Positions 4,527 to 21,019 of a stretch of 24,893 nucleotides of DNA are shown here, one piece after another; position 1 is the first letter of the stretch; each line of letters starts with the position of its first letter. The notes under the pieces were generated by a model that was not told the DNA's origin, did no database searches, and worked only from the letters and a program-made list of their open reading frames with translations. The position numbers and the translations under genes were made by a program. Location: sequence record NC_043427.1; one strand, 5' to 3'.

Positions 4527-4605
4527 GGGCAAGGTATGAGAGGCTATTACAGCAGTTTAAGGGAGGGCATACAGGTTTGAGATTCCAGGCTATGCTGTCG
4601 AGGAC

Positions 4606-6636: not shown

Positions 6637-6680
6637 TAAAAGCAACTGACTTTAGCTTGTGGTAGAGAGTGGGTGAGAAT

Positions 6681-6812
6681 ATGGCGAGCCCAGTAGACCT
6701 TGCGGCATTGTTTGGGCAGCTAGTGGGGATTCTGCCCTGGATAATGGTAATCGCATTACTGCCGGTCTTGATAAAGAGCATAGTAGAGGCGATAAGGGAG
6801 TTCAGGGCTTAG
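6681..6812 (+). CDS. Small hydrophobic MASP-family protein 1 (43 aa, MASPVDLAALFGQLVGILPWIMVIALLPVLIKSIVEAIREFRA)
   Basis: GGGTGAG RBS; paralogous to 6826 and 20849; not in the ORF track. Confidence 0.8.
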   Translation: MASPVDLAALFGQLVGILPWIMVIALLPVLIKSIVEAIREFRA

Positions 6813-6825
6813 GGGGTGAGGAGTG

Positions 6826-6948
6826 ATGGCTAGTCCGTTCGACCTAAGTCAGATATTCCAGATGATAGTGCCAATAATGATGATACTCTTCGTGGTAATG
6901 CTTGTAAGCGTGCTCTTCAGGAGCCTCAGAGGAGCCTTCACAGCATAA
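6826..6948 (+). CDS. Small hydrophobic MASP-family protein 2 (40 aa, MASPFDLSQIFQMIVPIMMILFVVMLVSVLFRSLRGAFTA)
   Basis: GGGGGTGAGGAG RBS; paralogous to 6681 and 20849; not in the ORF track. Confidence 0.8.
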   Translation: MASPFDLSQIFQMIVPIMMILFVVMLVSVLFRSLRGAFTA

Positions 6949-7017
6949 CACTAGCAGCACTAACGAGGCAGCCAAGCATATATCCAATCAAAGCATCTTT
7001 TTAACCCAGGGGCAGAG

Positions 7018-7236
7018 ATGACTGAAGACTGCAAAGTAGGGGTTAGATGTCCTGTCTGCAATACAGTATTCTTCATTGATAGGATGGCTCTTGCCCAAGG
7101 AGAGATAAAGTGCCCACATTGTGGGGCTTCTCTGGTATTAGTTCCTAAAGACCCAACGCTCTTAGCTCAAATGGCATTGTACAAGGAGCTCAGCTTAATA
7201 TTAAAGAAAGTTGAGAGAATGCTCGGTGGGGACTAG
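7018..7236 (+). CDS. Zinc-ribbon protein
   Basis: CPVC...CPHC pairs with zinc-ribbon spacing. Confidence 0.8.
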   Translation: MTEDCKVGVRCPVCNTVFFIDRMALAQGEIKCPHCGASLVLVPKDPTLLAQMALYKELSLILKKVERMLGGD

Positions 7237-7238
7237 CA

Positions 7239-7508
7239 ATGACGAGCCAGATAAAGGAGCTGGAGAGGAGGGTTTCGAAGCTGGAAGATAAAGTGAATGA
7301 TTTGGAGGTTGCTGTTGGGGACTTGAAGGTTGCTATTGGAAGGCTTGAGGCAAAGATAGACACCCTTGTTCAGCAAAATAAGGAGCTAGTATCAATTATA
7401 AAGTCGAGGAATACTGGCTCCCTCACGGTTTTATTAATAAAATATGTCGTGTTCCCTCTTATTGTCATTCTAGGGGGGTTGATTGGGCTCAAGCTCACAC
7501 TTCCTTAA
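7239..7508 (+). CDS. Coiled-coil protein with C-terminal membrane anchor
   Basis: Regular heptads (LERRVSKLEDKVNDLEVAVGDL) followed by a hydrophobic helix. Confidence 0.75.
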   Translation: MTSQIKELERRVSKLEDKVNDLEVAVGDLKVAIGRLEAKIDTLVQQNKELVSIIKSRNTGSLTVLLIKYVVFPLIVILGGLIGLKLTLP

Positions 7509-7764
7509 ACAAATCATAAAGAAATGGTGGAGCTATGTTGGGAGGAATCCCCTGAAGAACTTGAGGAAGAGGCTTATACTGTGGTATGTTACCCTTGTTT
7601 TTTTGATATTAGCCGATGAATACGTTAAGGAGGGCTATATCCTGAGGCCTCGGGACTTCCTTATTCCATTTACGCATGAAAACCTTCTTCTCGTTTTAAC
7701 CCTAGCTTTTATAATTGCTTACTGGAAGCTCCTGGGTGGGAGGGATGATAGGGATAATAGCTGA
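7483..7764 (+). CDS. Two-TM membrane protein; true start uncertain (possibly ATG 7535 via a frameshift, or TTG 7561)
   Basis: Two hydrophobic segments; no good in-frame RBS/start near the 5' end. Confidence 0.6.
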   Translation: MGSSSHFLKQIIKKWWSYVGRNPLKNLRKRLILWYVTLVFLILADEYVKEGYILRPRDFLIPFTHENLLLVLTLAFIIAYWKLLGGRDDRDNS

Positions 7765-8749
7765 TACTTGGGGGATTTCGTTTAGGAGGGTGGCTTTCCT
7801 CACTGAGATGGGTCTTAGAAGGATTGGCTATGTTTCTAGGGTCTATGAGGTTAGGTCTCCAACGATATTATGGGGGTCTTTTGCGAGGATTATAATCGTG
7901 GGGGATACGGCTCTCCTCCTTAAGATGGGTTCACACGAGGTGTGGGCACCTTATTCAGAGCAGAGGGTTTGGTGGGCAGACACCCCCCTTGAGTATGGCT
8001 CGATTGTTACTAGGAGGATGGTTGATTTTCTCAATGCAAATTATAGGGTTGCAGCGGTAAGCGAGTACAACGCTAGGCAGTATAGGGAGCTGGGTGTTAA
8101 GGTTCACGGACTAATACCGAGGCCTGTTGATATCGGGGCAATAGCTAGGGCTGACAGGACCGTTTGGAGGAGGAAGTTTGGAGGAGAGTATATCTTAACG
8201 ATAGGGAGCGATACGATATTGTTAAGAGACAGATATCCAAGGAAGGGGCTTGACATATGCGATGCTGCCATAGGGCTAATTAAGGGAGAGCTTAAGAAGA
8301 GGGGGATAAGGACGGTTGCAGTTACTAACTGGAACATGATGAACTTCGATTACGTGCTACAGGCTGGTAGTCTATCAGATGAGGAGATATACTCCTTAAT
8401 AGTCGGGGCCAAACTGTTTATCTGGTGTAGCAGAAGAGAAGGATTCGGAATGCCACCCCTTGAGGCTATGGCTGCTGGGGTTCCGATTGTCTACTCGGAC
8501 GCTCCAGCACACAACGAGTTCCTTGTTGGCTATAAGGTGCCTCCAAGAGCTGAGCTCGAAGTAACACATAGGGAATCGGGGCTTCCAATGATTGTTTACG
8601 ACTTCTCAGCTAAACACTTCGCTGATACAATCCTTTATGCTCTAGAGGATATTGAGAATGACATGCATCTTGCCTATGTCGAGGAGGGTCTTGAGAGAGC
8701 GAAATACTTTGACGTTAGAAACGTTGCACAAATGTTAATTGAAATATAG
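7745..8749 (+). CDS. GT-B fold glycosyltransferase (GT4-like)
   Basis: RKG motif (YPRKGLD) and REGFGMPPLEAMAAGVPIV signature. Confidence 0.92.
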   Translation: MIGIIADTWGISFRRVAFLTEMGLRRIGYVSRVYEVRSPTILWGSFARIIIVGDTALLLKMGSHEVWAPYSEQRVWWADTPLEYGSIVTRRMVDFLNANYRVAAVSEYNARQYRELGVKVHGLIPRPVDIGAIARADRTVWRRKFGGEYILTIGSDTILLRDRYPRKGLDICDAAIGLIKGELKKRGIRTVAVTNWNMMNFDYVLQAGSLSDEEIYSLIVGAKLFIWCSRREGFGMPPLEAMAAGVPIVYSDAPAHNEFLVGYKVPPRAELEVTHRESGLPMIVYDFSAKHFADTILYALEDIENDMHLAYVEEGLERAKYFDVRNVAQMLIEI

Positions 8750-8774
8750 GGTATTATGGGGTGTGGGTGGTAGC

Positions 8775-8933
8775 ATGGATGTAGCAGAGGAGATAATAAG
8801 GAGGTTTCTGAACATAGTGATTACTATTGTCGTCTTGACAATGGCTCTCTTCATGTTCCAACCGCTCTTAGAGCGACTGGGGGTTGCTGGAGAGCTAATG
8901 ACAAGGGCAATAGTGTCAGCAGCGACAGGGTAA
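8775..8933 (+). CDS. Small membrane protein (52 aa)
   Basis: ATG after GGGTGG; hydrophobic helix IVITIVVLTMALFMFQPLL. Confidence 0.65.
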   Translation: MDVAEEIIRRFLNIVITIVVLTMALFMFQPLLERLGVAGELMTRAIVSAATG

Positions 8934-9068
8934 CGTTATAATTAATGGAGAATGTATTCTTGAGAGGAGGGGGGTGCATGGCATGAATAGTGTTTCTGCT
9001 GATAAGGTGGAGAAAGCAACGAAGGTTCTTCCGGCATCTGAGGAGAGTGCTCCCGGGAGGTGAGTGGG

Positions 9069-9752
9069 ATGGGGTGGAAGCAGTACCTTAGCATAACTTT
9101 CCCAGATTGCGATAGCTCGTGGGGTGATTTGCAGCCTATCAGGATAATCTTCCCTGATAGGGAGGTTTGTACTCGTGGAGTCCTTACAGATAGTAGCAAT
9201 GTCTACAGGGAGAGCCCGAAAAACGTAATGTATGGAGCATCGAAAGTGAGGATTAGAGTCAAGTATTATGTCATTTTCGAAGCTGGGCAATACGGGAACG
9301 TTGCAATTTATATTAGTACATGGGAGAACGATACTAGGAAGAAGTTTAATGGGCAGTATGAGCTAGTGGGCATTCTTCACTCACTCGATAGTCCCAGGTC
9401 TTACAACGTTATAGAGGAGAGAGAGGCGGTGTTTGAGTTTGAAGGAGCAACGATGAGGATATATGTTGATGGGCAAGAGCTAGCAAGCTACACTATTGAT
9501 GCTCCGCTCACCCACTTCAGCCTATGTGCTGCTACTAAGGAGCTATACGGCTCTACAGGAAGAGCTGGAGTTGCAATTGAACAAGTTGTTGGAGAATATT
9601 ACGACCAGTTTGAGGATATGATTGCTCAGTTCATGAGCATATTCAACGTAATGATACCGATGATGTTCATAATTATGATGTTGCCTATGGTGATTAGCCT
9701 ATTCAGAGGGATATTTGCAGAGCCTGGGGGTGGTAGGCGTGGCCAGGCTTGA
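9069..9752 (+). CDS. Beta-sandwich (ConA/LamG-like) domain with a C-terminal MASP-like hydrophobic helix; candidate adhesin
   Basis: VFEFEGATMRIYVDGQEL is a LamG/ConA-type motif; tail IFNVMIPMMFIIMMLPMVISLFRG; GGAGGTGA RBS. Confidence 0.55.
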   Translation: MGWKQYLSITFPDCDSSWGDLQPIRIIFPDREVCTRGVLTDSSNVYRESPKNVMYGASKVRIRVKYYVIFEAGQYGNVAIYISTWENDTRKKFNGQYELVGILHSLDSPRSYNVIEEREAVFEFEGATMRIYVDGQELASYTIDAPLTHFSLCAATKELYGSTGRAGVAIEQVVGEYYDQFEDMIAQFMSIFNVMIPMMFIIMMLPMVISLFRGIFAEPGGGRRGQA

Positions 9753-10047
9753 GTCTGCTCTAGAGGTTGCAGCTCCTGCTGCTGCTAGGGCTGCTCGGGG
9801 GGCTGCCGAGTTTGTTGCAGCAGAGGAGTTCCCAAGGCTAGTGAGGAACATTATACTAGTGAGCATGATGGGAGCAATGGGCTATATGATACTGAGAACG
9901 TTCCAGGGGGTATCCCCGGCTGTAAGCGAGTCTATAGAGCAGCTTCAGCCTGTAATAGCTACAACAATAGCTGTCGTTGTTCCTATGATGGTAATAGTCT
10001 TCGTGCTTGCAGTGATTAGAGCTATTGTTAGGATAATTGCGGGGTGA
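9739..10047 (+). CDS. Two-helix hydrophobic hairpin protein (coat-like)
   Basis: Two hydrophobic helices linked by RTFQGV, a motif shared with the next ORF. Confidence 0.7.
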   Translation: MARLESALEVAAPAAARAARGAAEFVAAEEFPRLVRNIILVSMMGAMGYMILRTFQGVSPAVSESIEQLQPVIATTIAVVVPMMVIVFVLAVIRAIVRIIAG

Positions 10048-10051
10048 GAAA

Positions 10052-10309
10052 ATGGCATTTATAGCTGGGATAGGGCTTGGAACTCTTTTATCAATACTTG
10101 CAAGGCTAGTCCTGGTAATAGGCGGGGCCATATCGGTATATTACATCTATAGGACGTTTAGCACAACGTTCCAGGGAGTGGAGCAGGCAGCACCAATAGC
10201 TGGGGGGGCTCTAGCAGTTATGGCTGCATTCTTCATGATGTTCCCAATATTCATGATAATGTTCATGATGATGACGCTAATGATAAGTCTGGTGAGGGTG
10301 TTTGACTAA
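10052..10309 (+). CDS. Two-helix hydrophobic hairpin protein (coat-like), Met-rich
   Basis: Two hydrophobic helices linked by TFQGV; GGGGTGAG RBS. Confidence 0.75.
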   Translation: MAFIAGIGLGTLLSILARLVLVIGGAISVYYIYRTFSTTFQGVEQAAPIAGGALAVMAAFFMMFPIFMIMFMMMTLMISLVRVFD

Positions 10310-10466
10310 TGACAGATTGAAGGAGGCGATATACTGGGTTCACACTATTTTCATGTCATTCTTCACTATGGCGGTAACGACGATGGCAATCGAGAAGACG
10401 CTTGCAATAATAAGGGAGAGAAGGTGGGTGTACACATACGAGCTTTATAATGAAAAAGAGGGATAG
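10302..10466 (+). CDS. Small hypothetical protein (54 aa, MTNDRLKEAIYWVHTIFMSFFTMAVTTMAIEKTLAIIRERRWVYTYELYNEKEG)
   Basis: TTG after GGTGAGG; fills the gap before the protease; not in the ORF track. Confidence 0.5.
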   Translation: MTNDRLKEAIYWVHTIFMSFFTMAVTTMAIEKTLAIIRERRWVYTYELYNEKEG

Positions 10467-10492
10467 ATTATAGGGACTGAGAGGGGGTAAGG

Positions 10493-11473
10493 ATGCCAAG
10501 AAAAGAGGTTGTAGCACATATCCTGGAGAAGCGGAGGAGCGAGCTCTTATCTAAGCCCAACGTTGTAGGCTATTCTAACGTTATTCAGAAGAGGATTAGG
10601 AGGGGCAGGGTAGTTGATGAGCCCGTTATACGTGTTTACGTGAAGAAGAAGCTCCCGAGGAACCTGCTGCGGCCTCAGGACTTGGTGCCAGAAGAGGTTG
10701 AGGGAATCAGGACGGATGTCGTTGAGATAGGGGAGGTAGAGGCATGGGCTTTACTGCAGCCTAGAGCTGCAGCTTCTCCACTCTATACTGGGAGATACAG
10801 GCCTGTGATAGCTGGGGTTTCGATAGGGCATTATCAGATAACTGCAGGGACCCTTGGATGGTATGTCAAAGCTCCTAATGCAGAGATACTATTTGCTAGT
10901 AATGCTCATGTATTCACACCTAATGCATCAGGGCAGGAGGGGCAGTATGAGGGAGACCCCATCCTCCAGCCTGGACCATACGACGGTGGCAGAAACCCAG
11001 ATGACAAAGTGGCAGAGTATGTTTGGCATAAGAGAGTAGTGCCTGAAGGCGAGGGAGGCATCAATCACATTGACTTTGCGGTTGCAAGACCAGTTGTTGA
11101 CTACCTTGTTAGAAACTATCACGGTACTCAACCCGTTCACGCTATTGGCCTACTATTCGCTGGGAGTAGCTCGATAACAGTTGTCTGCAAATGTAAGCAC
11201 ATCTATAATGAGGGCTATAGGTTCATAGATTTCACGGGAGCTGAGATGAAGTGTGTAGACCCCCTCGATGATGAGGTAACGTTGAGTGCAACGAAGGAGG
11301 GAAGGACAACGGGATATCACGGAAACATTATAACTGACGAGAGTGCTGCTGTCAGGGTTAATTATGGAGGCTTTACAGCGTATTTCGAGGATGTGATATT
11401 CTTTAGAAACCCCTTCGGGCAACCCGGGGACTCGGGTTCATTTGTCTTTATCCCAGATGCATCATTTGACTGA
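10493..11473 (+). CDS. Trypsin-like (PA clan, Nal1-like) serine protease with N-terminal pro-domain
   Basis: Catalytic triad motifs SNAHV (His), IDFAVA (Asp), GDSGS (Ser); also KEGRTTG and VRVYVKKK...TDVVEIG. Confidence 0.92.
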   Translation: MPRKEVVAHILEKRRSELLSKPNVVGYSNVIQKRIRRGRVVDEPVIRVYVKKKLPRNLLRPQDLVPEEVEGIRTDVVEIGEVEAWALLQPRAAASPLYTGRYRPVIAGVSIGHYQITAGTLGWYVKAPNAEILFASNAHVFTPNASGQEGQYEGDPILQPGPYDGGRNPDDKVAEYVWHKRVVPEGEGGINHIDFAVARPVVDYLVRNYHGTQPVHAIGLLFAGSSSITVVCKCKHIYNEGYRFIDFTGAEMKCVDPLDDEVTLSATKEGRTTGYHGNIITDESAAVRVNYGGFTAYFEDVIFFRNPFGQPGDSGSFVFIPDASFD

Positions 11474-11478
11474 GTGGG

Positions 11479-11919
11479 GTGAGAGGAGTGGGCTTGCAGC
11501 TTATTGAGCCACAGGATGGCAAGATTAATGCAAACTTTAAGGAGATATTCAACATCATTGTTAGGCCCACAACTAGCTATGATAAGATAGTGCTCCGTGA
11601 TAAGGACAGCAAACGTGTTATCACTGAGACTAGAAACCCCCCGGTAAACGAGGATTTACCTTTCACGGTAGCGGCATGGAATGGTGGTACATGGGAGATA
11701 GTTGGCATAGTAAGTAATAGTGAGACTGATAAGCTGGAGGTTCAGGTTAACGTTAGCAGTCCCTTTCCTCCACCGTCTCCTCCGCCTAGCAATATTAATG
11801 CTCAACTGGCTCTGTCAGTTTACACGATTAGCCAGATAACTATGGTTACTGCATTTGTGCTCGCTCTCACAAGGGTATTACGCTTGATAATGAAGAGGGT
11901 TGTTAGAAAGCTGGGATAA
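11479..11919 (+). CDS. Beta-rich ectodomain, Pro-rich linker and C-terminal membrane helix; putative surface/virion protein
   Basis: SSPFPPPSPPPS linker, hydrophobic tail, then basic KRVVRK. Confidence 0.7.
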   Translation: MRGVGLQLIEPQDGKINANFKEIFNIIVRPTTSYDKIVLRDKDSKRVITETRNPPVNEDLPFTVAAWNGGTWEIVGIVSNSETDKLEVQVNVSSPFPPPSPPPSNINAQLALSVYTISQITMVTAFVLALTRVLRLIMKRVVRKLG

Positions 11920-11965
11920 CCCTTTAAAACCAAGGATGACAATAGTAGATGGTTGGTGAAGGCGG

Positions 11966-12142
11966 GTGCCTCACCCAAAGAGGGTTGTTGTTGAGGATAA
12001 TCTTAGTGAGTTGCAGAAGGCCATAATGGAGCTGCACTCTCAGGGCTTCAACAGGATAGAGCTTCATTTTCATGGTAGCAAGAGGCACGCTAGGGAGGGC
12101 ATAAAGCCCGATTTCGTGCTTGTCAGGGCTTTCAGAGAGTGA
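11966..12142 (+). CDS. Small hypothetical protein (58 aa, MPHPKRVVVEDNLSELQKAIMELHSQGFNRIELHFHGSKRHAREGIKPDFVLVRAFRE)
   Basis: GTG after GGTGAAGG; genome-typical codons; not in the ORF track. Confidence 0.65.
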   Translation: MPHPKRVVVEDNLSELQKAIMELHSQGFNRIELHFHGSKRHAREGIKPDFVLVRAFRE

Positions 12143-12198
12143 GAACATGGGGGACCCCTATAAGGTGATGGATGACGAGAAGACTATAGGAGGCTACT

Positions 12199-12409
12199 TT
12201 GTCAGCGGAAGCAATGTACTATGCAGACATGATAGTAAAGCGTTCAAGCTTCATAGCGATTCTAGCGGAGAAGGCTGGACGCCCCCATTGACACGATGAT
12301 TCGGGAGATAAGGGCAGTAGAGATGCTCGGGAAAGCGATAGCGACGGCAGCAGCAAACGCTGCAAAGAGGCTTGAGGAGCTGAAGCAGGTAAGGGAGGCG
12401 GAAGGGTGA
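12199..12409 (+). CDS. Small helical protein(s) with ambiguous reading frame
   Basis: Either TTG 12199 (GGAGG RBS) joined by a +1 shift at C5 12282-12286 to the frame ending at 12409, or two coupled ORFs 12147-12299 and 12296-12409. Confidence 0.4.
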
Positions 12410-12415
12410 GGCGTG

Positions 12416-13459
12416 ATGGTGAAGACGGTAAAGGTTCCGGATGAGCTCTATGAGAAGCTAAAGGAGATGGCAGACTCCCAGGGCAAGGCAATACATGAGG
12501 TAATCTCAGGCCTCCTGGAGAGGATAGAGGTTGGGGAGGTTCAAATCAAGCTCCCAAAGCCAAAATTCATACCATTGAGGTATCCTGCATATTGTGTGTT
12601 AGGGAACCATAAGATTGACCCTGAGGAATACAGGAAGAATACTGGAAGAATACCATATGCTCTTTGGTTCCCAGAGCTAGGTGGAGTAATATGCATTGAT
12701 TGTTTGATAAAAGAGGTATTCACAAAGGAGGAGCAAGCGAAGGTTTTGACAAAACTTGAAGTAGAGATTAGGAAGCTTAGAGCAATCAAGAGACAGCTTA
12801 ACAAGGAAGTAGAGGAGCTTGCAATGCAGTATAGCGTTGCAGAGATATTTGCAAGGCTAGACTCGATTATTAATGAGATAAACGAAGCACTGAAGCTTGT
12901 AAGGAGCCTCGAAGACTATATTTGGTGTAAGGAGGAGGAGTGTGAGGAGAAGAAGAAGGTTGTTCTTGAGGCTATGGAGAAGATTGATGGCATAAAAGAG
13001 CAACTAGAAAAGCTGGAGCTACCCGAGAGTTGGGCTAAGAAGCTGATAAAGAAGGCTGCTTCAGAGTCATATACATCAACATCATATAGCAGCTACAGGA
13101 GGAGAAGGTGGGGGTCGATGGGATGGAAGCGGTTGAAAGAAAGAGCTATCAAGTCGAGGGTTATCAAAACGACGCATCGCCTTGTAGACGGCTCTTTGAA
13201 AGAGTACCAGCGAATCAACTACTACTTCCAGATGTACTTCTCGATTCCAGAGTGGTGGTTGAAAGAGGAGACGAAGCGTTACGAGATACTGCAAGTAGAG
13301 AAGGCGAGAAGCTTCTTAGTGCTACCCCAGGATATTACTCTGGAGGAGTTGGAGTCGTTGAGGAGAGAGATATCGAGCCTGATAAGAAAGGCGAGGAGAG
13401 GCAAACAGATATTTGCGACCAATGCGAGGAAGCGAAAAGAATCTGCAAGGGGAGGATGA
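12416..13459 (+). CDS. RHH, putative Zn-binding segment and coiled coil, fused in frame to an AbrB/SpoVT-like module (internal ATG 13118)
   Basis: VKTVKVPDELYEKLKEMADSQGKAIHEVI (RHH); C-x3-H...CIDC; MYFSIPEWWLK...FLVLP (AbrB-like). Confidence 0.7.
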   Translation: MVKTVKVPDELYEKLKEMADSQGKAIHEVISGLLERIEVGEVQIKLPKPKFIPLRYPAYCVLGNHKIDPEEYRKNTGRIPYALWFPELGGVICIDCLIKEVFTKEEQAKVLTKLEVEIRKLRAIKRQLNKEVEELAMQYSVAEIFARLDSIINEINEALKLVRSLEDYIWCKEEECEEKKKVVLEAMEKIDGIKEQLEKLELPESWAKKLIKKAASESYTSTSYSSYRRRRWGSMGWKRLKERAIKSRVIKTTHRLVDGSLKEYQRINYYFQMYFSIPEWWLKEETKRYEILQVEKARSFLVLPQDITLEELESLRREISSLIRKARRGKQIFATNARKRKESARGG

Positions 13460-13519
13460 AGCTAACGAGATTTTGCCTTGATGCTAAGGAGTATTGCATT
13501 GCGGTTGGGTGTGGATGGG

Positions 13520-13741
13520 ATGAAGGTTAGGGACTTCTGGAGGAGATACCTCGAAGCAGACGACGTTGAGAGGCTTGACTTGATTAAGGGGTTGCTAGAG
13601 AGGCATATCCACGCATGCTATACAATATACAAGGATAATAGAGTTCTTGGAGTTCATTGTCTAGTATCAATTGTGAACTCGTTTTTCCTTGATTTGATTA
13701 GGGTGCTCGGGGAGGAGAGAGATGGGCTGCGTGAGGAGTAG
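13520..13741 (+). CDS. Hypothetical protein
   Basis: In-frame ATG 13520 after GGTGTGGA; overlaps the next ORF. Confidence 0.6.
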   Translation: MKVRDFWRRYLEADDVERLDLIKGLLERHIHACYTIYKDNRVLGVHCLVSIVNSFFLDLIRVLGEERDGLREE

Positions 13742-13940: not shown

Positions 13941-14125
13941 AAGTATCAACAGTGTTTAGAGTGTTTGTAACTGTCATTGCATTAATCCTATTTGCTTTCA
14001 GCATTCTCTACATCCCACCAGAATTTCTTTCGAATGATATATTTGCTGCAACACTATTTCTTTCGCTCTTCATGCTATTACTAATCGTTGTACTTCTCAT
14101 ATGGACCTCTCCAGCCCTCGATTAG
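13937..14125 (+). CDS. Two-TM small membrane protein (62 aa)
   Basis: Two long hydrophobic segments; GGGTGAG RBS. Confidence 0.7.
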   Translation: MKVSTVFRVFVTVIALILFAFSILYIPPEFLSNDIFAATLFLSLFMLLLIVVLLIWTSPALD

Positions 14126-14181
14126 GGTTTTGGCACATACAGACTAAGTAGTAAGGTTTATTACCCCCCGTGCCAAAACTG
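14125..14181. repeat. Inverted repeat flanking the recombinase promoter
   Basis: GTTTTGGCAC 14127-14136 and GTGCCAAAAC 14170-14179 with a 33-nt spacer that contains the TATA-like AAGGTTTATTA. Confidence 0.85.
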
Positions 14182-14201
14182 GTAGGGTGGAGGGATGCGG
14201 G

Positions 14202-15413
14202 ATGCCCAGGCCCTCTATCCAGAATGTCCTCGATTTAAGGCGGGATGAGGTCCTTGAGCTCCTTGGTCGAGGCATCCCAGCGGAGGATGTAGCGAAGAAA
14301 TTCGGGGTATCAAGGAGGACGCTATACCGCTGGCTAGAGCGTCAAGGCCTCACTGTTCAGAAAATCAGGGAGGAGTACCAGAAGCTGAAGGAGGAGCGTG
14401 AAAGGCGGAAGAGGGAGAGGCTAGCAGCTATTGGTGAGATACCGGAGGACTTCGAGAAGTTTGTTGAAATCGAGGAGGTAAGAAAGTTCCTTGACTGGCT
14501 CAAAGCAAGGAGGGTAACAACAGCAGTAGACATCGTGAGAACCCTACACAGGGTATGCCTAGACCTTGGTATCCACCCGATGCTACTGCTTGAGGATGAG
14601 GGGAAGGAGAAGCTGACGAGCCTCCTAGCCAAGTACAATGAAATGTATAAGAAGTGGACTGTGGAGAGCATTAAGGCCAATCTCAGGCTGTGGTACAAGT
14701 TCAACGAGAAGATGCCCCCCGCTATATTGAGCCTCGAAGCCTACAAGTCCAACATGGCTCACCTAGCGTGGTTCAACGTTAGCGATAGAGCCGTAATCCT
14801 TGAGACAGCCTTCCGCTTACTCGACAAGGAGCAGTTTGACAAGGTTAGAGCAGCTTTATTGTTCCTATTCTATACTGGGTCGAGGGCTGAAGCCCTGACT
14901 AACGTGAGGTTTGAGGCTCGTGAGGTTCAAGTTGATGGTAAGAGGATTACAGCGATAATAGCAATCACGAGGGAGAAGGGTAGGCACGGGAAAAAGCAGT
15001 GGGAGAAGCCTCTCCATCCAGTCATCTATGAAAAGTACATCAAGGGCAGGCTGCCATTCTCCCAGGCGGAGCTCAAGTGGTTGAGGAGGGTCCTCAAAGC
15101 GATATACAGAGAAGCTCTGAAGGGGCAGGAGAGCAGCGTGAAATATGAGTATGCTATGAAACACGTCATTCATATCTGGAGACACACGGCAGCAATGAGC
15201 ATGTTGCATGCGACGGACTGGAACGTTGGACTTGTTGCTGAGATTCTTGGGTGGGAGAGCCCCGATATTCTCCTCAAAATTTACGGCAGGATGCCTCCAG
15301 AGTGGAAGATTGCCCAGGCGTTGGGTGTAACTGTCGAGAGGCCTCCGTTCAGGTTTGTTTACGGGAATGAAGAAGAGAGGCTCAAGGAGCTTAGAATTCT
15401 GGAGCTCCCTTAA
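14202..15413 (+). CDS. Tyrosine recombinase with N-terminal HTH
   Basis: HTH (AEDVAKKFGVSRRTLYRWL); catalytic R (YTGSR), K (REKG), HxxR (HIWRH), W (LGWES, Cre-like) and Y (LKIYG). Confidence 0.92.
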   Translation: MPRPSIQNVLDLRRDEVLELLGRGIPAEDVAKKFGVSRRTLYRWLERQGLTVQKIREEYQKLKEERERRKRERLAAIGEIPEDFEKFVEIEEVRKFLDWLKARRVTTAVDIVRTLHRVCLDLGIHPMLLLEDEGKEKLTSLLAKYNEMYKKWTVESIKANLRLWYKFNEKMPPAILSLEAYKSNMAHLAWFNVSDRAVILETAFRLLDKEQFDKVRAALLFLFYTGSRAEALTNVRFEAREVQVDGKRITAIIAITREKGRHGKKQWEKPLHPVIYEKYIKGRLPFSQAELKWLRRVLKAIYREALKGQESSVKYEYAMKHVIHIWRHTAAMSMLHATDWNVGLVAEILGWESPDILLKIYGRMPPEWKIAQALGVTVERPPFRFVYGNEEERLKELRILELP

Positions 15414-15437
15414 CCTCTTCGTACAGCAAGAAGAGGC

Positions 15438-15452
15438 AAACCCTTTTTATAG
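15438..15452 (+). promoter_or_regulatory. Putative archaeal promoter
   Basis: AAACCCTTTTTATAG, intergenic, about 36 nt upstream of ATG 15488. Confidence 0.6.
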
Positions 15453-15487
15453 TTATGCCCCTTCAAGATTTTTAGTGGTGAGACCAT

Positions 15488-15709
15488 ATGGAGCTTGTTG
15501 ATGAAATCAGATGGTTGAGGGAGGCTTTGCAGGACCTCGAAGACAGGGTTATTAATTGGGTGTCAAGACCCAGGGTTTACACGAGTCTCAGGGAAGCGTT
15601 TGAGCACACTGCAACCGATATTATGCTTGCTAGGACGCTTTTGGATATAGCAGCTTACAGGGAGGAGCTAGCACGGATAGAGAGGGTGGTGAAGGATGCA
15701 TGGGGTTGA
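15488..15709 (+). CDS. Helical/coiled-coil hypothetical protein (73 aa)
   Basis: GGTGAG RBS; heptad pattern. Confidence 0.7.
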   Translation: MELVDEIRWLREALQDLEDRVINWVSRPRVYTSLREAFEHTATDIMLARTLLDIAAYREELARIERVVKDAWG

Positions 15710-16100
15710 TGTTGAGAAGAGGATTTCCGAGCTGCTTGACGAATTTCAGCTATTCACCCCTCCTTTCCAGCAGCATATAATCAGCATCGAGGAGATTCTC
15801 CCTAAAACACCAATCTGTGTGATGCCAGAAGATATGAGAAGGATAGTTGCGAGTGCAAGGCTTGGAGATAGGAACATTGTTCTCTCTACACGGAGAAGGA
15901 TTAAGTTTGACACGACTATAACAGCAAAGGTTGACCCAGCAGCAAAGGCCTTCCTCGATGAAATGATTTCGCTCGGGATATTCGAGAATAAGAGCGAGGC
16001 GATAAGGGTTGCAATTTACCTCCTAAGGGAGGTGTTTGAGAAGGCGATACAGCAGAAGAGGGCTGAGCTAGACAATTTTAATAATGAAGGGAGAATATGA
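15696..16100 (+). CDS. Protein with C-terminal ribbon-helix-helix domain
   Basis: TITAKVDPAAKAFLDEMISLGIFENKSEAIRVAI is a CopG/Arc/MetJ-type pattern. Confidence 0.8.
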   Translation: MHGVDVEKRISELLDEFQLFTPPFQQHIISIEEILPKTPICVMPEDMRRIVASARLGDRNIVLSTRRRIKFDTTITAKVDPAAKAFLDEMISLGIFENKSEAIRVAIYLLREVFEKAIQQKRAELDNFNNEGRI

Positions 16101-16118
16101 GGAATGGTGGTGAGGGTT

Positions 16119-16235
16119 ATGGCTGCTCTCGGAAGCCCAGGACTAGCTGAGACGTTATCTAGCATAATGTATTGGCTCATGATAATAGGAGGGCTACTAG
16201 CTCTAGCGTATCTCCTGATTGAGGTGCTCAGATAA
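16119..16235 (+). CDS. Small single-TM protein (38 aa, MAALGSPGLAETLSSIMYWLMIIGGLLALAYLLIEVLR)
   Basis: GGTGAGG RBS; TAATG overlap with the next gene; not in the ORF track. Confidence 0.65.
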   Translation: MAALGSPGLAETLSSIMYWLMIIGGLLALAYLLIEVLR

Positions 16236-16516
16236 TGAGCATCGAGGAGCTGAGGAGTATTGATGTTGAATGCATATTCAGGCTAATAGAGGAGTATGCA
16301 TCTTACCTCCCAGAGGGAACGAGGAGCGTAATACTTGAGAACTTGAGGAACAAGAGGATAGCGGATGCTAAGGCCTTCGTTGAAGGCATATTGGGGGAGA
16401 AAATAGAACCAGAGAGGCTTGTGAAGGATAACAGTTTAAAACCAGTCTTAGTTTTAGCTTTACATCGGTGCGGGAAGGGTGGGCAGGCTCCTAGTAAGGC
16501 ACTCCAGGGCATTTAG
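16235..16516 (+). CDS. Hypothetical protein (93 aa)
   Basis: Coupled ORF with genome-typical composition. Confidence 0.7.
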   Translation: MSIEELRSIDVECIFRLIEEYASYLPEGTRSVILENLRNKRIADAKAFVEGILGEKIEPERLVKDNSLKPVLVLALHRCGKGGQAPSKALQGI

Positions 16517-17435
16517 CCTGACAAAAAAGGCTAGAGAGATTGCAAGCATACTTGGTGGGATTCTTTTAGGGCCCAATGATAACATTATAGTTGACTATCC
16601 AGCGGTTGCCCTTTATGTGCTTACGGCTAACAATCTAGACCTCGGTTTAGTTGCTTCCACGTATTTTCAGGCTAGAAGGAATATTTTCTATGCTATAGCT
16701 GAGGGAAGACCTAAGCTTCATTGGCTGGCTAGGGAGATGCTCGATAATTCAATTGTTATTGCTCCTTCTGAGTACTCTGCAAGCAAGATTAGCGAAGCGG
16801 GCATACATGTAGAGCGTGTTATCCATTTTGCAGTTACCCCTCCAAAGGTTGACTATGATTACGCTATTAGTCTGAGGCAAAAGTTCCAGGGGAAAAAGCT
16901 GGTCGTATGGGTGGGGGCTAACATGTATCGGAAGGGTGTTGATTTGATTGAGGATGCAGCGGAAACACTCGGTAACGATTATGCGGTTTACGTTGTAACT
17001 GGGCCTGGAGACTATAACATTAACGATATTAAAGCGAAGAACGTTCATGTTGACGACAGAGTGTTTAGGCTCCCCGAGGATAAGCTGGGGGCATTATATT
17101 ATGCAGCGGACGCACTCCTAATGACGACGAGGAACGAGGGGTTTGGGCTACCCTCTATAGAGGCTACACTAATAGGGACACCAGCAGTCATACCTGAACA
17201 CCCGGTGCTTCAAGAGGTCTTGGGAGACTGTGGGTTCTTTTACGAGGTGAGGAGGGTTAGGATTGAGGATTTCTTCGGCTTGATGGATATGGAATATTAC
17301 GAGCCAGATATCTCAACCCTGCCTGAAGCGATGGAGAGGGCTCTTAGGGAGGGGGTTTTAACTAGGTGTATTAGCGTCCTTAGTAAGAGGTTTGGCCCAG
17401 ATAATTACAAGGCGTTTCTTAGGTACTTGATTTAG
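16479..17435 (+). CDS. GT-B fold glycosyltransferase (GT4-like)
   Basis: VWVGANMYRKGVD and RNEGFGLPSIEATLIGTPAV motifs. Confidence 0.92.
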   Translation: MGRLLVRHSRAFSLTKKAREIASILGGILLGPNDNIIVDYPAVALYVLTANNLDLGLVASTYFQARRNIFYAIAEGRPKLHWLAREMLDNSIVIAPSEYSASKISEAGIHVERVIHFAVTPPKVDYDYAISLRQKFQGKKLVVWVGANMYRKGVDLIEDAAETLGNDYAVYVVTGPGDYNINDIKAKNVHVDDRVFRLPEDKLGALYYAADALLMTTRNEGFGLPSIEATLIGTPAVIPEHPVLQEVLGDCGFFYEVRRVRIEDFFGLMDMEYYEPDISTLPEAMERALREGVLTRCISVLSKRFGPDNYKAFLRYLI

Positions 17436-17440
17436 GAGGG

Positions 17441-18613
17441 GTGAGAGGCGTGAGAGTTCTGATAACAGGTGTAACTGGGTTCAAGGGCTCTTATCTTGCG
17501 AAGAGGCTCGTTGAGGAGGGATGGAGGGTTTTCGGGCTGGTCAGGGGGAGAAGCGATAACCACAGATTCGTAAGGCTTAGACTACTGGGGATTCTCGATA
17601 ACGTGGAGCTTGTTGATGGGGACATGACAGACCCTGTGAGCTTGCAGAGAGCGATAGCTAAGACCCAGCCGGACGTGATATTTCACCTTGCGGCTCAATC
17701 TTTCGTTGGAAGGAGTTTCGAGGCTCCGCTGGAAACATTTAACATTAACGCTTACGGGACGGTAGCCCTACTTGAGGCTGCAAGAGCTCATGTACCAGAC
17801 TCTAAGATAATCGTTGCAGGTAGCAGTGAGGAGTATGGTAAACAGTTCATATCGGAGATGCAGTGGGAGAGGAGCGGGAAGCCGGGTCCAGAGCCTAAAA
17901 GGCTCCCCGAGCTCCCGATTCGTGAAGACAACCCGCTTAGACCTGTTAGCCCATATGCTTTGAGTAAGGTTGTTGAGGACTTTGCTTGCCAGGCCTATGC
18001 TAGGATGTATAACATGGATTGTACAGTTCTCAGGGTCTTCAATACTGAGGGCCCTCTCAGGGGAGAGGTCTTCGTTACGGCATCAATAGTGAAGCAGCTT
18101 GTAGCAGTCAAGAACGGCTTGAGAAAATATGTCGAGCTAGGCAACGTTGCAGCTATGAGGGACTGGTCTCATATCGAGGACACCATTGAGGCTTATTATA
18201 ACGCTACAAAGGTGAGAGGAGGCGTTTACAACGTTGGTAGCGGGAGGATTAACAGTGTGCTCTACTTCCTTGTTAGAGCGTTTAACGCTGTGTTTAATGA
18301 TGAGGCAGAACTCGTTAGGATAGAGGATAGGAACGTTATTACACTGTTCCCAGAGGAGGTTGACGAGATGATTTTGAGTTACATGAAGGAAGGTGTTGAA
18401 CCATTCAAGCCAGGCATGAGGATATCTGTGATAGGCAAGAGACATAGTGTTGATGTGGTTCTTAGCAGAGAGAGGTTCAGGCCTGCTGACGTTCCTCTGC
18501 TACAAGCTGACTATTCAAGGTTTGCACAAGCTACTGGATGGAAGCCTATGAGGAGCCTAGACGACATCATAGAGGACCTTGTAAGCTTCTATACTGGAAG
18601 GTGGAAGCCTTGA
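17441..18613 (+). CDS. gmd: GDP-mannose 4,6-dehydratase-like extended SDR
   Basis: TGVTGFKGSYLA Rossmann loop, HLAAQSFV, SSEEYG, YALSK (YxxxK), FNTEGPLRGEVFVT and LGNVAAMRDW; substrate is inferred from motif resemblance. Confidence 0.75.
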   Translation: MRGVRVLITGVTGFKGSYLAKRLVEEGWRVFGLVRGRSDNHRFVRLRLLGILDNVELVDGDMTDPVSLQRAIAKTQPDVIFHLAAQSFVGRSFEAPLETFNINAYGTVALLEAARAHVPDSKIIVAGSSEEYGKQFISEMQWERSGKPGPEPKRLPELPIREDNPLRPVSPYALSKVVEDFACQAYARMYNMDCTVLRVFNTEGPLRGEVFVTASIVKQLVAVKNGLRKYVELGNVAAMRDWSHIEDTIEAYYNATKVRGGVYNVGSGRINSVLYFLVRAFNAVFNDEAELVRIEDRNVITLFPEEVDEMILSYMKEGVEPFKPGMRISVIGKRHSVDVVLSRERFRPADVPLLQADYSRFAQATGWKPMRSLDDIIEDLVSFYTGRWKP

Positions 18614-19269
18614 AGGCCCTCCAACGGATGGAGAAAGTGGTGGAACAGGCCAAGAAATGGGCTAGCAAGGGAGACGGAATCATTAGCGGTAGTGTTGCAG
18701 CATGGCTACAGGGAATTAAATTGCAGCTTCGAGACGCAGACATAATTGTTAAGAAGATGCCTAGCATTAAGGAAGTGGAGATAGTGAAGGCCGAGAGGGT
18801 TGTTTACGGGAGCACTATAAACGACGTTGTTGCATTCATTGATGATGGGGTTGGTGTGGAACTAGTTGCTAATCCAGTTGTGTACAGGTACCTTGCTGAG
18901 AGAGGTGTTGTGGTTGATGGGCTGAAGGTTGTGTCGTTGAGTGAAGTATTTGCAATGAAGCTGGCAAAGCTTGCAATAAGCCTTGGAGCCAGTAAAGCAG
19001 ATATTATCTGGCATCAAGTGCCAAAGACGGTATCAGACTTACTGTTGCTTTACGATGAAGGCGTTGTTGATTTTGCCCGTGTAAGAGATTTCATCGAGAC
19101 GTTTGGGTTCAGGGACGCTATTGCATTGCTAAGATACAGCCATATTGCTCTTGAAGTGCAGATGTCGTTTACTCTAGCATCATACTATCTTGGAATATAC
19201 GATTACGAGGAGGTTATGGAGATTTATCGAAGCATGATGAGGGAGACGTTGGAGGTGCTCGGGGTATGA
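18610..19269 (+). CDS. Pol-beta-superfamily nucleotidyltransferase (AbiEii/MenT-like) paralog 1
   Basis: IISGSVAAWLQG...RDADII, VELV, and KVVSLSEVFAMKL...SDLLLL; start TTG 18610 (TTGA overlap) or ATG 18628. Confidence 0.75.
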   Translation: MKALQRMEKVVEQAKKWASKGDGIISGSVAAWLQGIKLQLRDADIIVKKMPSIKEVEIVKAERVVYGSTINDVVAFIDDGVGVELVANPVVYRYLAERGVVVDGLKVVSLSEVFAMKLAKLAISLGASKADIIWHQVPKTVSDLLLLYDEGVVDFARVRDFIETFGFRDAIALLRYSHIALEVQMSFTLASYYLGIYDYEEVMEIYRSMMRETLEVLGV

Positions 19270-19865
19270 GGTTAAGGGCTTACACGTTAGAAGACCTAGC
19301 TAGAGTCTATAAAAAGGTAGATGCGAAGTTCAAAGTCGTTGTTGGGGATATTGTGGCCTGCATCTATGGATATCCTTGCTTGGCTAAAGACATTGACTTA
19401 GTTATGCCGCTTGAGCTAGCTGGGAGGCTCAAGAACCTGCCAGGCGTGAAACTCGGAGAAGGCAAGGTTGTTGAAACAGAGATTGACGGCATAAACGTTA
19501 GCTTCAACCTTGAGCCCATGTTCAGGCTTAAGCTATTCTACATGCCTTTTATTGAGGTATCAAGGATTAACGGGGTAGAGGTTGCTCATTACTCTCTGGA
19601 AAGGTATGTTGCTGGACGGCTGAAAAGGCTAATAATAATGCTAAGGAACGGGAAGGAGAATATCTATCTCATACCTTATCAGTTGATGGACTTGGTGCCA
19701 ATCCTGTGTGATAAGAGAGAGATACTATTGGGGGCTAGGCGTATTCTTGAGAGGAGGTTTGACATGGATTATAACGAGTTGTTGCGGATGAATAGGGACA
19801 TTATTGATGCTGCAAACAATATGAGTAGAGACATATTCGGAGTTGCTTGCAGATGGTCGTGGTGA
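19266..19865 (+). CDS. Nucleotidyltransferase-fold paralog 2 (degenerate)
   Basis: VVVGDIVACIYGYPCLAKDIDLV and YSLERYVAGRL...MDLVPIL; ATGA overlap. Confidence 0.7.
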   Translation: MRLRAYTLEDLARVYKKVDAKFKVVVGDIVACIYGYPCLAKDIDLVMPLELAGRLKNLPGVKLGEGKVVETEIDGINVSFNLEPMFRLKLFYMPFIEVSRINGVEVAHYSLERYVAGRLKRLIIMLRNGKENIYLIPYQLMDLVPILCDKREILLGARRILERRFDMDYNELLRMNRDIIDAANNMSRDIFGVACRWSW

Positions 19866-19868
19866 ATC

Positions 19869-20537
19869 GTGGTGGTATGGATAAGGGATAGGTGTTGCTT
19901 GAGGGCATTAAGCCTTGCAGAAGCCGTTTTAAAGGAGAGTACAGCGTTCCCTGCTGGGAGCCTTTTGCTCCTCAAGGGTGGTGTTCAGACTTACTTTAGG
20001 GATATTGATATTATGAGTACTGTTGAGGATTACGAGAGGAATGCTGAAGTTTTCAATAGAATCCTGAGTGAATGCACAGTCTTGAAGCATAGATGGCTTG
20101 CTAGGAGCTGTTTTGGTTGCCCTGTCGAGCTTATACCCGTCCCGAGCTTCCTAAAGGAAGAATACGAGAGGAGGGGCCCAGTAGAGTTTTGGCTTGGAAC
20201 TAACATTGCGAAACTTACACGTTGGAAGCACGAGTTCACGGCTGCAAAGTTCCTAGCAAAACTTTTTGTCGTGTTGTCCCAGGTGGATGATATTAGCATT
20301 GAAGATGTTAGGGAGCACTTAGAGGTTCAGAGGAAAGTTGGTTACATGCGGGGTAAGATTCAGATTAAAAAGAGCACGTTTACTCCTGCATATTATCTTT
20401 ACAGATACATCTATATTAGCGATGATACGAGGTTTGTTGAAGCAGCTTATGAGCACGAGTTAGGCGTATTCTCATCAAGGCTTATTGCATTTTTTGAGAG
20501 GCTTCGCTCACACGGAATACCCGTTGAAATCCTTTAG
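19869..20537 (+). CDS. Nucleotidyltransferase-fold paralog 3
   Basis: FPAGSLLLLKGGVQTYFRDIDIM and PVELIP. Confidence 0.65.
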   Translation: MVVWIRDRCCLRALSLAEAVLKESTAFPAGSLLLLKGGVQTYFRDIDIMSTVEDYERNAEVFNRILSECTVLKHRWLARSCFGCPVELIPVPSFLKEEYERRGPVEFWLGTNIAKLTRWKHEFTAAKFLAKLFVVLSQVDDISIEDVREHLEVQRKVGYMRGKIQIKKSTFTPAYYLYRYIYISDDTRFVEAAYEHELGVFSSRLIAFFERLRSHGIPVEIL

Positions 20538-20550
20538 AAACCTTTATTAT
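20537..20550 (+). promoter_or_regulatory. Putative archaeal promoter
   Basis: GAAACCTTTATTAT about 36 nt before ATG 20586. Confidence 0.55.
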
Positions 20551-20585
20551 GGGTCTGCATCATTGTATATGGATGGTGCCCAGCG

Positions 20586-20828
20586 ATGGACCCGGAGCTG
20601 AAACCCATTATTCGGCTTATCCTTCTAAGGCTCGTGGAAGAGCCCGGGGCAAGAATGAAATATAGAAAGCTTTACAGATATGTTCAAGAGCACGCAAAGA
20701 AATTCGGGGTATCCCCAACTGAAGCCATTTACGCAGCAGCCAACCTAGACCTTATTGTTATTGAGGGAGACGAGGTAAGGCTGACAGAGAAGGGGGAGAA
20801 AGAAACATTTATAATAATGGGATGGTAG
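20586..20828 (+). CDS. Winged-helix DNA-binding protein
   Basis: LDLIVIEGDEVRLTEKG wing/terminal helix motif. Confidence 0.7.
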   Translation: MDPELKPIIRLILLRLVEEPGARMKYRKLYRYVQEHAKKFGVSPTEAIYAAANLDLIVIEGDEVRLTEKGEKETFIIMGW

Positions 20829-20848
20829 CTAGAGTTATGGTGAGGGTT

Positions 20849-21019
20849 ATGGCTAGCCCATTAGATTTATCATCAATATTCGGCCAGCTAGTGCCAATAT
20901 TCGTGTTCATCATGATATTTGTACTGCTGATTACGCTGTTCAAGACCCTCTTCAGAACAATATCAGGGGCCTCTGCTAGGAGGTTTCCAAGCATCTTAGC
21001 TAGGATAAGGGGCAGGTAA
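20849..21019 (+). CDS. Small hydrophobic MASP-family protein 3 with a basic tail (56 aa)
   Basis: MASPLDLSSIFGQLVPIFVFIMIFVLLITLF; ATG 20849 after GGTGAGG. Confidence 0.8.
   Translation: MASPLDLSSIFGQLVPIFVFIMIFVLLITLFKTLFRTISGASARRFPSILARIRGR

Follow-up and report, generated by a model that had tools for sequence, protein, structure and literature searches.

The 24,893-nt window analyzed here represents the whole genome of Aeropyrum coil-shaped virus (ACV, HE681887 / NC_043427, Spiraviridae), with which it is 100% identical over the 6 kb compared (6000–12000). Sequence comparison confirmed that three of its short open reading frames (ORFs), ORF14, ORF15 and ORF44, encode true paralogues. 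Profile comparisons further show that the helix of this trio is, as far as sequence can tell, reused in ORF21, ORF22 and ORF23 of the same genome and, under another head, in a protein of the uncultured relative L024. The small helices and ORF21–ORF23 may be virion subunits that assemble from the membrane in the manner of inoviruses, a tentative reading which relies on circumstantial evidence and to which we give a little less than an even chance.

ACV has the most unusual virion architecture among known single-stranded DNA (ssDNA) viruses. Its genome is circular ssDNA and its virion, which has no envelope, is a coiled rope made of two intertwined halves of the circular nucleoprotein, with a 20-nm appendage on both ends; the virus leaves its host without lysis, and virion proteins migrate as major bands of 23 and 18.5 kDa and minor ones of 5–13 kDa (PMC7416610). 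The 2020 ICTV profile links no ACV gene to structural proteins and describes Spiraviridae as a single species without known relatives (PMC7416610). In the GenBank record there are 57 ORFs, of which nearly all lie on the + strand and which include two glycosyltransferases and one sugar-modifying enzyme, and GC skew is positive along the entire genome. No gene-level assignment was found in the literature on Spiraviridae, spiraviruses or ACV, a scope outside which the original 2012 description lies, and the accessible literature gives no account of the small-helix family, its modular reuse or ACV relatives. Hence, while the ORF14, ORF15 and ORF44 genes were already annotated but uncharacterised, the family, its reuse and the relatives are apparently new in that literature.

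The three paralogous genes are the following:
6681..6812, + strand: ORF14, 43 aa counted from the MASP start (GenBank ORF14-47 begins at GTG 6669)
6826..6948, + strand: ORF15, 40 aa (GenBank ORF15-40), second gene of a tandem pair
20849..21019, + strand: ORF44, 56 aa counted from the MASP start (GenBank ORF44-65 begins at ATG 20822)

A first-pass annotation of the window had pointed to three MASPxDL paralogs at these positions, and this observation was borne out. The motif M[AS]SP.D[LI] occurs at only three sites in the six-frame translation of ACV (6681, 6826 and 20849) and in none of 300 shuffled windows. Pairwise Smith-Waterman comparisons of ORF14, ORF15 and ORF44 exceed shuffled controls with z = 10–17, while the transmembrane (TM) helices of ORF32, ORF18, ORF12, ORF5 and ORF17 give z of about 0 against the trio. 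The additional claim that two of the paralogs were absent from the ORF track reflects an artefact of that track: all three are in GenBank as ORF14-47, ORF15-40 and ORF44-65, each labelled "hypothetical protein". The calculated masses of the proteins are 4.5–6.3 kDa. They share one layout, in which an N-terminal MASPxD is followed by 25 uncharged residues (one or two of them prolines), a Lys or Arg, and a basic or amphipathic tail. Family members were defined by a match to the family hidden Markov model (HMM) together with D6, 25 uncharged residues and K/R; the stretch from D to the first K/R is exactly 25 uncharged residues in 24 of the 25 members collected, and the trio itself scores 75–91 bits against the family HMM. 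ORF14 is the founder of a "LPWIMVIALLP...KSIVEAIREFRA" clade, ORF15 belongs to a Met-rich "IVPIMM" clade, and ORF44 is a third paralogue whose basic tail (...ARRFPSILARIRGR) carries a charge of +7.

A Shine-Dalgarno-like GGTGAG lies 4 nt 5' of ATG 6681 (ORF14), and GGTGAGG lies 3 nt 5' of ATG 20849 (ORF44). Because these motifs precede the MASP ATG and the orthologues begin at MASP, the annotated starts of ORF14 (GTG 6669) and ORF44 (ATG 20822) are probably too far upstream. Codon comparison with the REYS relative gave 16 synonymous and 7 non-synonymous differences for ORF14, and 10 synonymous and 3 non-synonymous differences for ORF15. The small-protein family is under purifying selection.

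The family extends beyond ACV. The family profile was compared with 1.84e9 representative proteins, both in a word-indexed search and in a full HMMER scan (E < 1e-3). The HMMER scan gave 13 matches, none in a named family; 12 of them are 38–65 aa long and have the layout of the trio, and the thirteenth, a repetitive 475-aa protein, is most likely spurious. These proteins come with uncultured relatives of ACV, for which the following sequences were used:
ENA ERZ23495249, contigs of 7.2 and 2.2 kb: relative with about 75% amino-acid identity to ACV
ERZ1742239 NODE_672 (loci L004/L008/L011/L013), 48.6 kb: relative, 38% GC
JGI Ga0180298_1000104 (L024), 17 kb: relative
Ga0186907_13189 (L030), 24.7 kb: relative
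Ga0496349_003064, 7.6 kb: relative
L018, L007/L010, L023 and L025–L027: further loci of ACV relatives

Three clades can be told apart in this collection: ORF14-like proteins with LPW...LLP and the tail KSIVEAIxEFRA, ORF15-like proteins with VPIM and a short basic tail, and ORF44-like proteins with a long basic tail containing the conserved RFPSILARI[KR]GR. ORF14-like and ORF15-like genes form a tandem pair every time. ORF14 orthologues are 65–86% identical in at least six lineages and no protein is better conserved between ACV and NODE_672 than ORF14 (77% identity, vs 66% for the integrase, 44% for the glycosyltransferase and 37% for the protease). The ORF44 orthologue P0010 keeps the MASP start and the tail RFPSILARIKGR, and is flanked by an ORF42-like fragment upstream on one side and ORF45 homologues on the other; no ORF44 orthologue was found in NODE_672 up to 44.7 of its 48.6 kb, the part read. 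Family-type small genes, one or two per element, were also seen in more distant elements among otherwise unrelated genes, where a beta-rich protein with a similar helix at its end is encoded too (L022 2192–2538 and 3623–4081; L027 3467–3586 and, on the - strand, 2291–1923), so that the spread of the module exceeds the ACV-like group. The L022 small proteins have N-terminal extensions ahead of A[PI]DI, and BLAST found no relation between the neighbouring L022 proteins and ACV proteins. No provirus was found in a scan of GTDB representative genomes.

Three further ACV proteins carry a helix of this type:
9069..9752, + strand: ORF21, 227 aa and 25.8 kDa, with a ConA-like head (residues 1–178) and a C-terminal helix (residues 180–215, nt 9606–9713)
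9739..10047, + strand: ORF22, 102 aa, an N-terminal amphipathic helix followed by a two-helix hydrophobic hairpin
10052..10309, + strand: ORF23, 85 aa, a hairpin paralogue of ORF22

A 25-sequence HMM was run against the six-frame translations of ACV and the relatives, 2768 pieces in all. The best non-family matches were the C-terminal helices of ORF21, from four lineages (17–20 bits, E 8e-5 to 5e-4); for the ACV helix, which is followed by a short basic tail, E is 4.6e-4. The same helix aligns with the family in hhalign with 84% probability (E 7e-6), and BLASTP across lineages independently links the small proteins to ORF21 helices (E 7e-5 to 2e-4). The first-pass proposal that a family-like helix closes ORF21 is consistent with all of these results. 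Next in the ranking, between the ORF21 and ORF22 matches, came a 37-aa protein of NODE_672. One ORF22 orthologue matches the family HMM with E 1.4e-3 and, in L024, so does a 122-aa protein (11482–11850) in which an Ig-like beta head precedes ...DWGLVVQMFMQWLPWILMIMLITLMVSLL (E 1.6e-3); the LPWI motif is common to the ORF14 clade and this head-bearing protein.

The helix of ORF22 that resembles the family is its second one, VVPMMVIVFVLAVIRAIVR, for which hhalign gives a weaker 38–40% probability (E 3e-4). The ORF23 helix taken alone is not significant (1.6%). ORF22 and ORF23 are paralogues, because hhalign aligns them over 59 columns with 89.5% probability (E 2e-6). They have TFQGV and two hydrophobic segments in common, as had been noticed in the first pass, whose quoted 18-mer does contain 8 Met. 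Kinship of the hairpin helices to the trio was thus supported, less firmly, for ORF22, and ORF23 joins through its paralogue. The AF2 model of ORF22 places helices at residues 2–58 and 60–101 with a break at residue 59, at a predicted local distance difference test score (pLDDT) of 69.5. Control helices (ORF17 C-helix, ORF18, ORF20, ORF26 C-helix and ORF5 N-helix) all score 10–13 with hhalign, at a probability below 1%. With column shuffling, z was 12 for ORF21, 9.5 for ORF22, 3.7 for ORF23, 4.0 for ORF26, 2.3 for ORF20 and 0.6 for ORF17; column shuffling breaks up the hydrophobic block and so inflates z, and values of about 4 are for this reason no evidence of kinship. The modular arrangement of bare, hairpin and head-plus-helix forms hence holds statistically for ORF14, ORF15, ORF44, ORF21, ORF22 and ORF23, and is strengthened by the L024 protein.

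A possible further member, not flagged in the first pass, is a thioredoxin-like protein:
5829..5930, + strand: N-terminal TM helix of ORF12, ahead of the thioredoxin-like domain

Its helix reaches 54% probability with hhalign (E 1.3e-4) and a column-shuffle z of 12, and is weak with the HMM (E 0.03–0.04), so that we include it only tentatively, on sequence grounds. In ACV as in its relatives, the small pair has both thioredoxin-like genes directly 5' of it. In the close REYS relative, ORF12 directly follows ORF9, and ORF10 and ORF11 are missing.

The fold of the ORF21 head is confidently predicted to be ConA-like, as the first-pass annotation had supposed. The AF2 model, built with four homologues, has a pLDDT of 86.7 and consists of a beta-sandwich (residues 1–178, mostly above 90) and one helix. 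Foldseek against the PDB matches the head, with probability 1.00, at about 10% identity and with E 3e-6 to 1e-4, to ERGIC-53, soybean agglutinin, Eph ligand-binding domains, GH16 glucanases and carbohydrate-binding modules of sialidases. Among viral models (BFVD), the matches are ConA-like domains of phage tail fibres and tropism determinants, most of the viral ConA-like matches being tail-fibre or receptor-binding proteins. With Pfam, the head reached 13.3 bits for Laminin_G_3, below the cut-off of 27.6. By analogy with these proteins, ORF21 may act as an adhesin.

The description of the family as Met/Ile-rich applies to part of it. The ACV proteome contains 2.9% Met on average, and the helices of ORF15 (4 Met in 25 residues), ORF21 (8 in 29), ORF23 (9 in 37) and ORF22 are Met-rich, with 4–9 Met per helix; ORF14 and ORF44 have one Met each. 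The enrichment is highest in ORF23 orthologues (counted in L004, L010, L018, L024, L025 and L030), which have 12–22% Met over the whole protein and 25–35% in the second helix, in six lineages of 38–47% GC. Since Met has a single codon, this enrichment is attributed to selection and not to composition.

Candidate expression signals flank the small genes:
6631..6639, + strand: TATA-like box TTATAATAA, 41 nt 5' of the ORF14 ATG
20809..20817, + strand: TATA-like box TTATAATAA, 31 nt 5' of the ORF44 ATG
6998..7002, + strand: T5 run 3' of ORF15, candidate archaeal terminator of a bicistronic ORF14-ORF15 unit

On the + strand, the exact 9-mer TTATAATAA is found at 6631 and 20809 only. Relatives have AT-rich boxes at the same place before the small pair, and four of them have longer T-runs at the same place after it. 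The ORF14-ORF15 pair therefore looks, from these predicted signals, like an autonomous short transcription unit, as for an abundant product.

The small pair belongs to a conserved gene block. Contigs of relatives show the same order as ACV, namely thioredoxin-like genes, small gene A, small gene B, Zn-ribbon, coiled-coil TM protein and glycosyltransferase, then ORF20-like, ORF21-like, ORF22-like and ORF23-like genes, serine protease and a head-plus-helix protein. The block formed by the two small genes, the glycosyltransferase, ORF20–ORF23, the protease and the head-plus-helix protein is kept in all relatives with enough sequence, and we infer that ACV-like elements have in it their conserved block for morphogenesis. 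In metagenomes, at least 30 clusters at 90% identity belong to the ORF22 family alone. In ACV, the other members of the block include:
7745..8749, + strand: ORF19, glycosyltransferase
8775..8933, + strand: ORF20, 52 aa, conserved single-helix protein
10493..11473, + strand: ORF25, trypsin-like/Nal1-like serine protease
11488..11919, + strand: ORF26, 143 aa, with a beta-rich head, a PPPSPPPS linker, a C-terminal helix and a basic tail

ORF25 is a possible maturation protease. ORF25 (326 aa) lacks a C-terminal hydrophobic helix; its homologues in relatives are 363–372 aa long and have a hydrophobic helix at their end. These longer homologues are located as follows:
L004 13891–15009
L018 5608–6699
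L024 8183–9277
L030 10664–11767

ORF26 is like the L024 protein with the family helix in its architecture and in its site after the protease; its probability against the family is below 1% with hhalign. ORF24 (10302–10466; 54 aa, one TM helix), which the first pass did not list and which is kept in the REYS relative, reaches z = 5.1 against the C-helix of ORF22 in pairwise comparison and z of about 3 against the helices of ORF21, ORF23 and ORF26.

Outside the block, one more single helix had been listed in the first pass:
16119..16235, + strand: ORF36, 38 aa counted from ATG 16119, one helix

ORF36 gives E 0.09 with a 3-sequence HMM and E >5 with the 25-sequence one. ORF36 and ORF44 share an identical 16-nt start context, GGTGAGGGTTATGGCT, which covers a Shine-Dalgarno-like motif as well as the start codon (16103–16121 and 20833–20851), and the annotated upstream starts at 16104 (ORF36) and 20822 (ORF44) are probably wrong.

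Some features of the genomes lie apart from this family. NODE_672 is almost entirely one-stranded and also codes for a Cas4-like nuclease, a radical-SAM protein with an intein, a methyltransferase and a RAMP-like protein; should it also be ssDNA, this element would be about twice the size of the present record holder. The N-terminus of ORF10 and ORF56 (24377–24577) are paralogues with the common motif DLP..Y..AH..CV, and ORF10 and ORF11 (3741–5829) correspond to a single fused 694-aa protein in NODE_672.

How could such helices build a virion? We infer, from these comparisons, membrane insertion, virion presence, DNA contact and an adhesin role. ORF14/15/44-type helices would enter the host membrane post-translationally and leave it during non-lytic extrusion of the circular ssDNA. 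They would then pack side by side by their hydrophobic cores, with their basic C-ends, notably the +7 tail of ORF44, toward the DNA. The head-bearing ORF21, and perhaps ORF26, would co-assemble through the common helix so that lectin-like heads are displayed, for instance in the appendages at the virion ends. Such a scheme would follow the logic of inovirus pVIII, pVII, pIX and pIII with unrelated sequences. In its favor are the conserved block, the small pair's own promoter-like box and T-run, the 77% identity of ORF14 and the pVIII-like polarity of the proteins, as well as the non-lytic release of a circular ssDNA virus, the minor 5–13 kDa virion proteins and the fact that ConA-like viral heads are typically receptor binders.

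Several observations weigh against this virion-subunit reading. At 23 and 18.5 kDa, the major virion bands are well above the masses of the small helices. The Pf3 coat protein and M13 pVII, pIX, pVIII, pIII and pVI were taken from genome records for comparison; against the Pf3 coat, pVIII, pVII and pIX, the family scores below 4 bits with the HMM and z <=2.8 with Smith-Waterman. The family profile found no PDB chain at E <=10, no Pfam coat family and no PHROG, nothing exceeding threshold in the Pfam and PHROG scans. The polar N-flank is 18–20 residues in Pf3/pVIII vs 6 in the ACV family, and the hydrophobic core 18–19 vs 25; at its surface, a capsid of such bare helices would as a result be very hydrophobic. 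Ordinary membrane anchors have a comparable layout. The ORF14 tail has a net charge of merely +1. No pI-type ATPase and no secretin/pIV was detected by Pfam among the 20 ACV ORFs scanned. The ORF22 model has no Foldseek match at E <=10, its pLDDT being 69.5 and simple hairpins being hard for Foldseek. The set of candidates is also smaller than first proposed, by three of the nine proteins: the ORFs at 8775, 11479 and 16119 each have one hydrophobic helix, as claimed, but ORF20 and ORF26 score no higher than control TM helices of the same genome, and kinship of ORF36 is not demonstrable, its protein similarity being not significant. Finally, the register in which the ORF21 helix is aligned differs by 7 residues between HMMER and hhalign, and no residue-level homology is therefore claimed; for the extended members, common descent and convergence of similar hydrophobic helices are not cleanly separable.

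The last point leads to a narrower view, in which the trio alone is a true family and the resemblance of ORF21, ORF22, ORF23 and ORF12 is due to convergence or composition under membrane constraints. The extended members score only 8–20 HMM bits, which would be noise in a large database, the alignment register varies with the method, and the inflated column-shuffle z lets ORF26 and ORF23 reach about 4 without real similarity. However, five control groups of TM helices stay at background, the ORF21 helices of four lineages lead the non-family matches among the 2768 pieces, the cross-lineage BLASTP matches are independent, and LPWI occurs in the head-bearing protein of L024 as well as in the ORF14 clade. 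We consider this narrower view improbable, an estimate made separately from those for the function of the proteins.

As for function, the proteins may instead stay in the host membrane, outside the virion, the capsid being made of other ORF products of about 23 and 18.5 kDa. They would then serve as an assembly or egress platform, as an anchor for glycosyltransferase, thioredoxin or protease, or as a superinfection-exclusion or viroporin-like factor. The arrangement D-25-K/R looks like a plain membrane anchor, indeed the standard layout of a single-pass one, and similar helices are found on enzymes (the ORF12 N-terminus and, C-terminally, the proteases of relatives), which they possibly anchor. 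The major virion bands far exceed the 4.5–6.3 kDa of the small proteins, and the family resembles no known coat protein. Nevertheless, residence in the membrane is compatible with incorporation into the virion in membrane-extruded viruses. The identity of ORF14, the conserved pair and its own box and T-run would suit an abundant structural product more than they suit an accessory factor, the conserved +7 tail of ORF44 suggests contact with nucleic acid, and minor virion proteins of 5–13 kDa do exist, ORF44, ORF22 and ORF23 being 6.3–10.8 kDa. On balance we regard a purely host-membrane role as unlikely, though it deserves serious consideration. The calculated masses nearest to the 23 and 18.5 kDa bands are those of ORF21 (25.8 kDa) and ORF5 (19.3 kDa), an assignment that is a guess. 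ORF5 has an N-terminal TM helix and a beta-rich domain; ORF5 and ORF6 (1301–2278) have similar ...RVTG ends and may be paralogues, and BLASTP found no ORF5–9 block in NODE_672.

Spindle-shaped and some filamentous archaeal viruses carry host-derived lipid, and the ACV virion might likewise contain host lipid in which helices and hairpins are embedded, with ORF21 as a glycan-binding surface spike. This would suit helices that are extremely hydrophobic with nearly no polar outer segment, the two glycosyltransferases and the sugar-modifying enzyme, and hairpins which, from general knowledge, have the size of spindle-virus and clavavirus coats. But no fold or sequence link to those coats was found and ACV is described as non-enveloped (PMC7416610), so that a lipid-containing virion appears very improbable.

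A bolder version of the virion-subunit reading is that ACV and its uncultured relatives are an independently evolved archaeal counterpart of the filamentous ssDNA phages. The rope would consist mainly of ORF14, ORF15 and ORF44 helices (4.5–6.3 kDa), the 18.5 and 23 kDa bands would be sodium dodecyl sulfate-resistant tetramers and pentamers of about 4.6 kDa (4 x 4.6 = 18.4, 5 x 4.6 = 23.0), and the 5–13 kDa proteins would be monomers to trimers. ORF21 and ORF26 would cap the ends as appendages, and the Met-rich helices (<=22% Met) would provide a plastic sliding interface that lets the virion act as a spring. The mass argument is numerology, a unit of 4.5–4.7 kDa giving 18–18.8 kDa when taken four times and 22.5–23.5 kDa when taken five times. 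Taken with all its parts, this proposal is a clear long shot. Should the virion role as such hold, ACV would have arrived, independently and as a second case, at the solution of the inoviruses, where helices stored in the membrane coat an extruded ssDNA, and coat and adhesin subunits would be built with one common polymerisation module.

Whatever their function, ORF14, ORF15, ORF44, ORF21, ORF22 and ORF23 are the best current candidates for virion or assembly subunits of ACV, although such a role is not proven. Moreover, Spiraviridae is no orphan: metagenomes contain dozens of related lineages, and these open the way to comparative and structural studies.

Several known systems invite comparison with these proteins. 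Archaeal type IV pilins and archaellins have a class III signal peptide, which is absent here: the MASPxD[LI] N-terminus is acidic and has no basic residue in all members. The paired paralogous major capsid proteins (MCPs) of Lipothrixviridae and Tristromaviridae recall the two adjacent paralogous structural-type genes that every ACV-like lineage keeps as a pair. The MCPs of archaeal filamentous viruses, such as SFV1 (PMC6105669), are larger helix-bundle proteins around A-form double-stranded DNA, whereas ACV has an ssDNA genome and, as units, single helices of 40 residues. ORF22 and ORF23, with two hydrophobic helices in 85–102 aa, are comparable in build to APBV1 VP1 (Clavaviridae) and SSV1 VP1. 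The coat proteins of spindle-shaped viruses and clavaviruses are similar in size to these hairpins, and we know of no description in those coat families of a Met content as extreme as that of ORF23 orthologues (12–22%). A profile of ORF22 retrieved nothing relevant among PDB chains. APBV1 has a host of the same genus as ACV (PMC7416610). The ORF21 head has the same fold as the ConA-like lectin and glucanase domains of phage tail fibres and L-type lectins, yet no known member of that group terminates in a helix module of the ORF21 type.

The closest parallel in design is with the inoviruses, which like ACV have circular ssDNA and are released without lysis. Their coat proteins resemble the trio in size (32–56 residues) and in running from an acidic N-end through one hydrophobic helix to a basic C-end, and the Pf3 coat, as the trio, is made without a signal peptide. 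M13 pIII ends in ...ANILRNKES and ORF21 in ...ISLFRGIF...RRGQA, both proteins consisting of a head, a C-terminal hydrophobic helix and a short basic tail. Thioredoxin-like genes adjoin the coat-like genes in ACV, and host thioredoxin is required for Ff assembly. There are also clear differences: the inovirus virion is a straight tube and that of ACV a coiled rope with major bands of 23 and 18.5 kDa, and the pIII anchor is not a paralogue of pVIII, whereas the head-bearing and bare forms of ACV have a common helix module. The likeness to inovirus pVIII and to clavavirus and fusellovirus coats suggested in the first pass appears to be one of design only, tentatively so for the hairpin coats, no sequence or fold link to pVIII, Pf3, APBV1 or SSV coats having been found. 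Together, these comparisons place the ACV proteins in a kind known from inoviruses, to which they add a helix module common to several proteins, Met-rich hairpins and an archaeal host.

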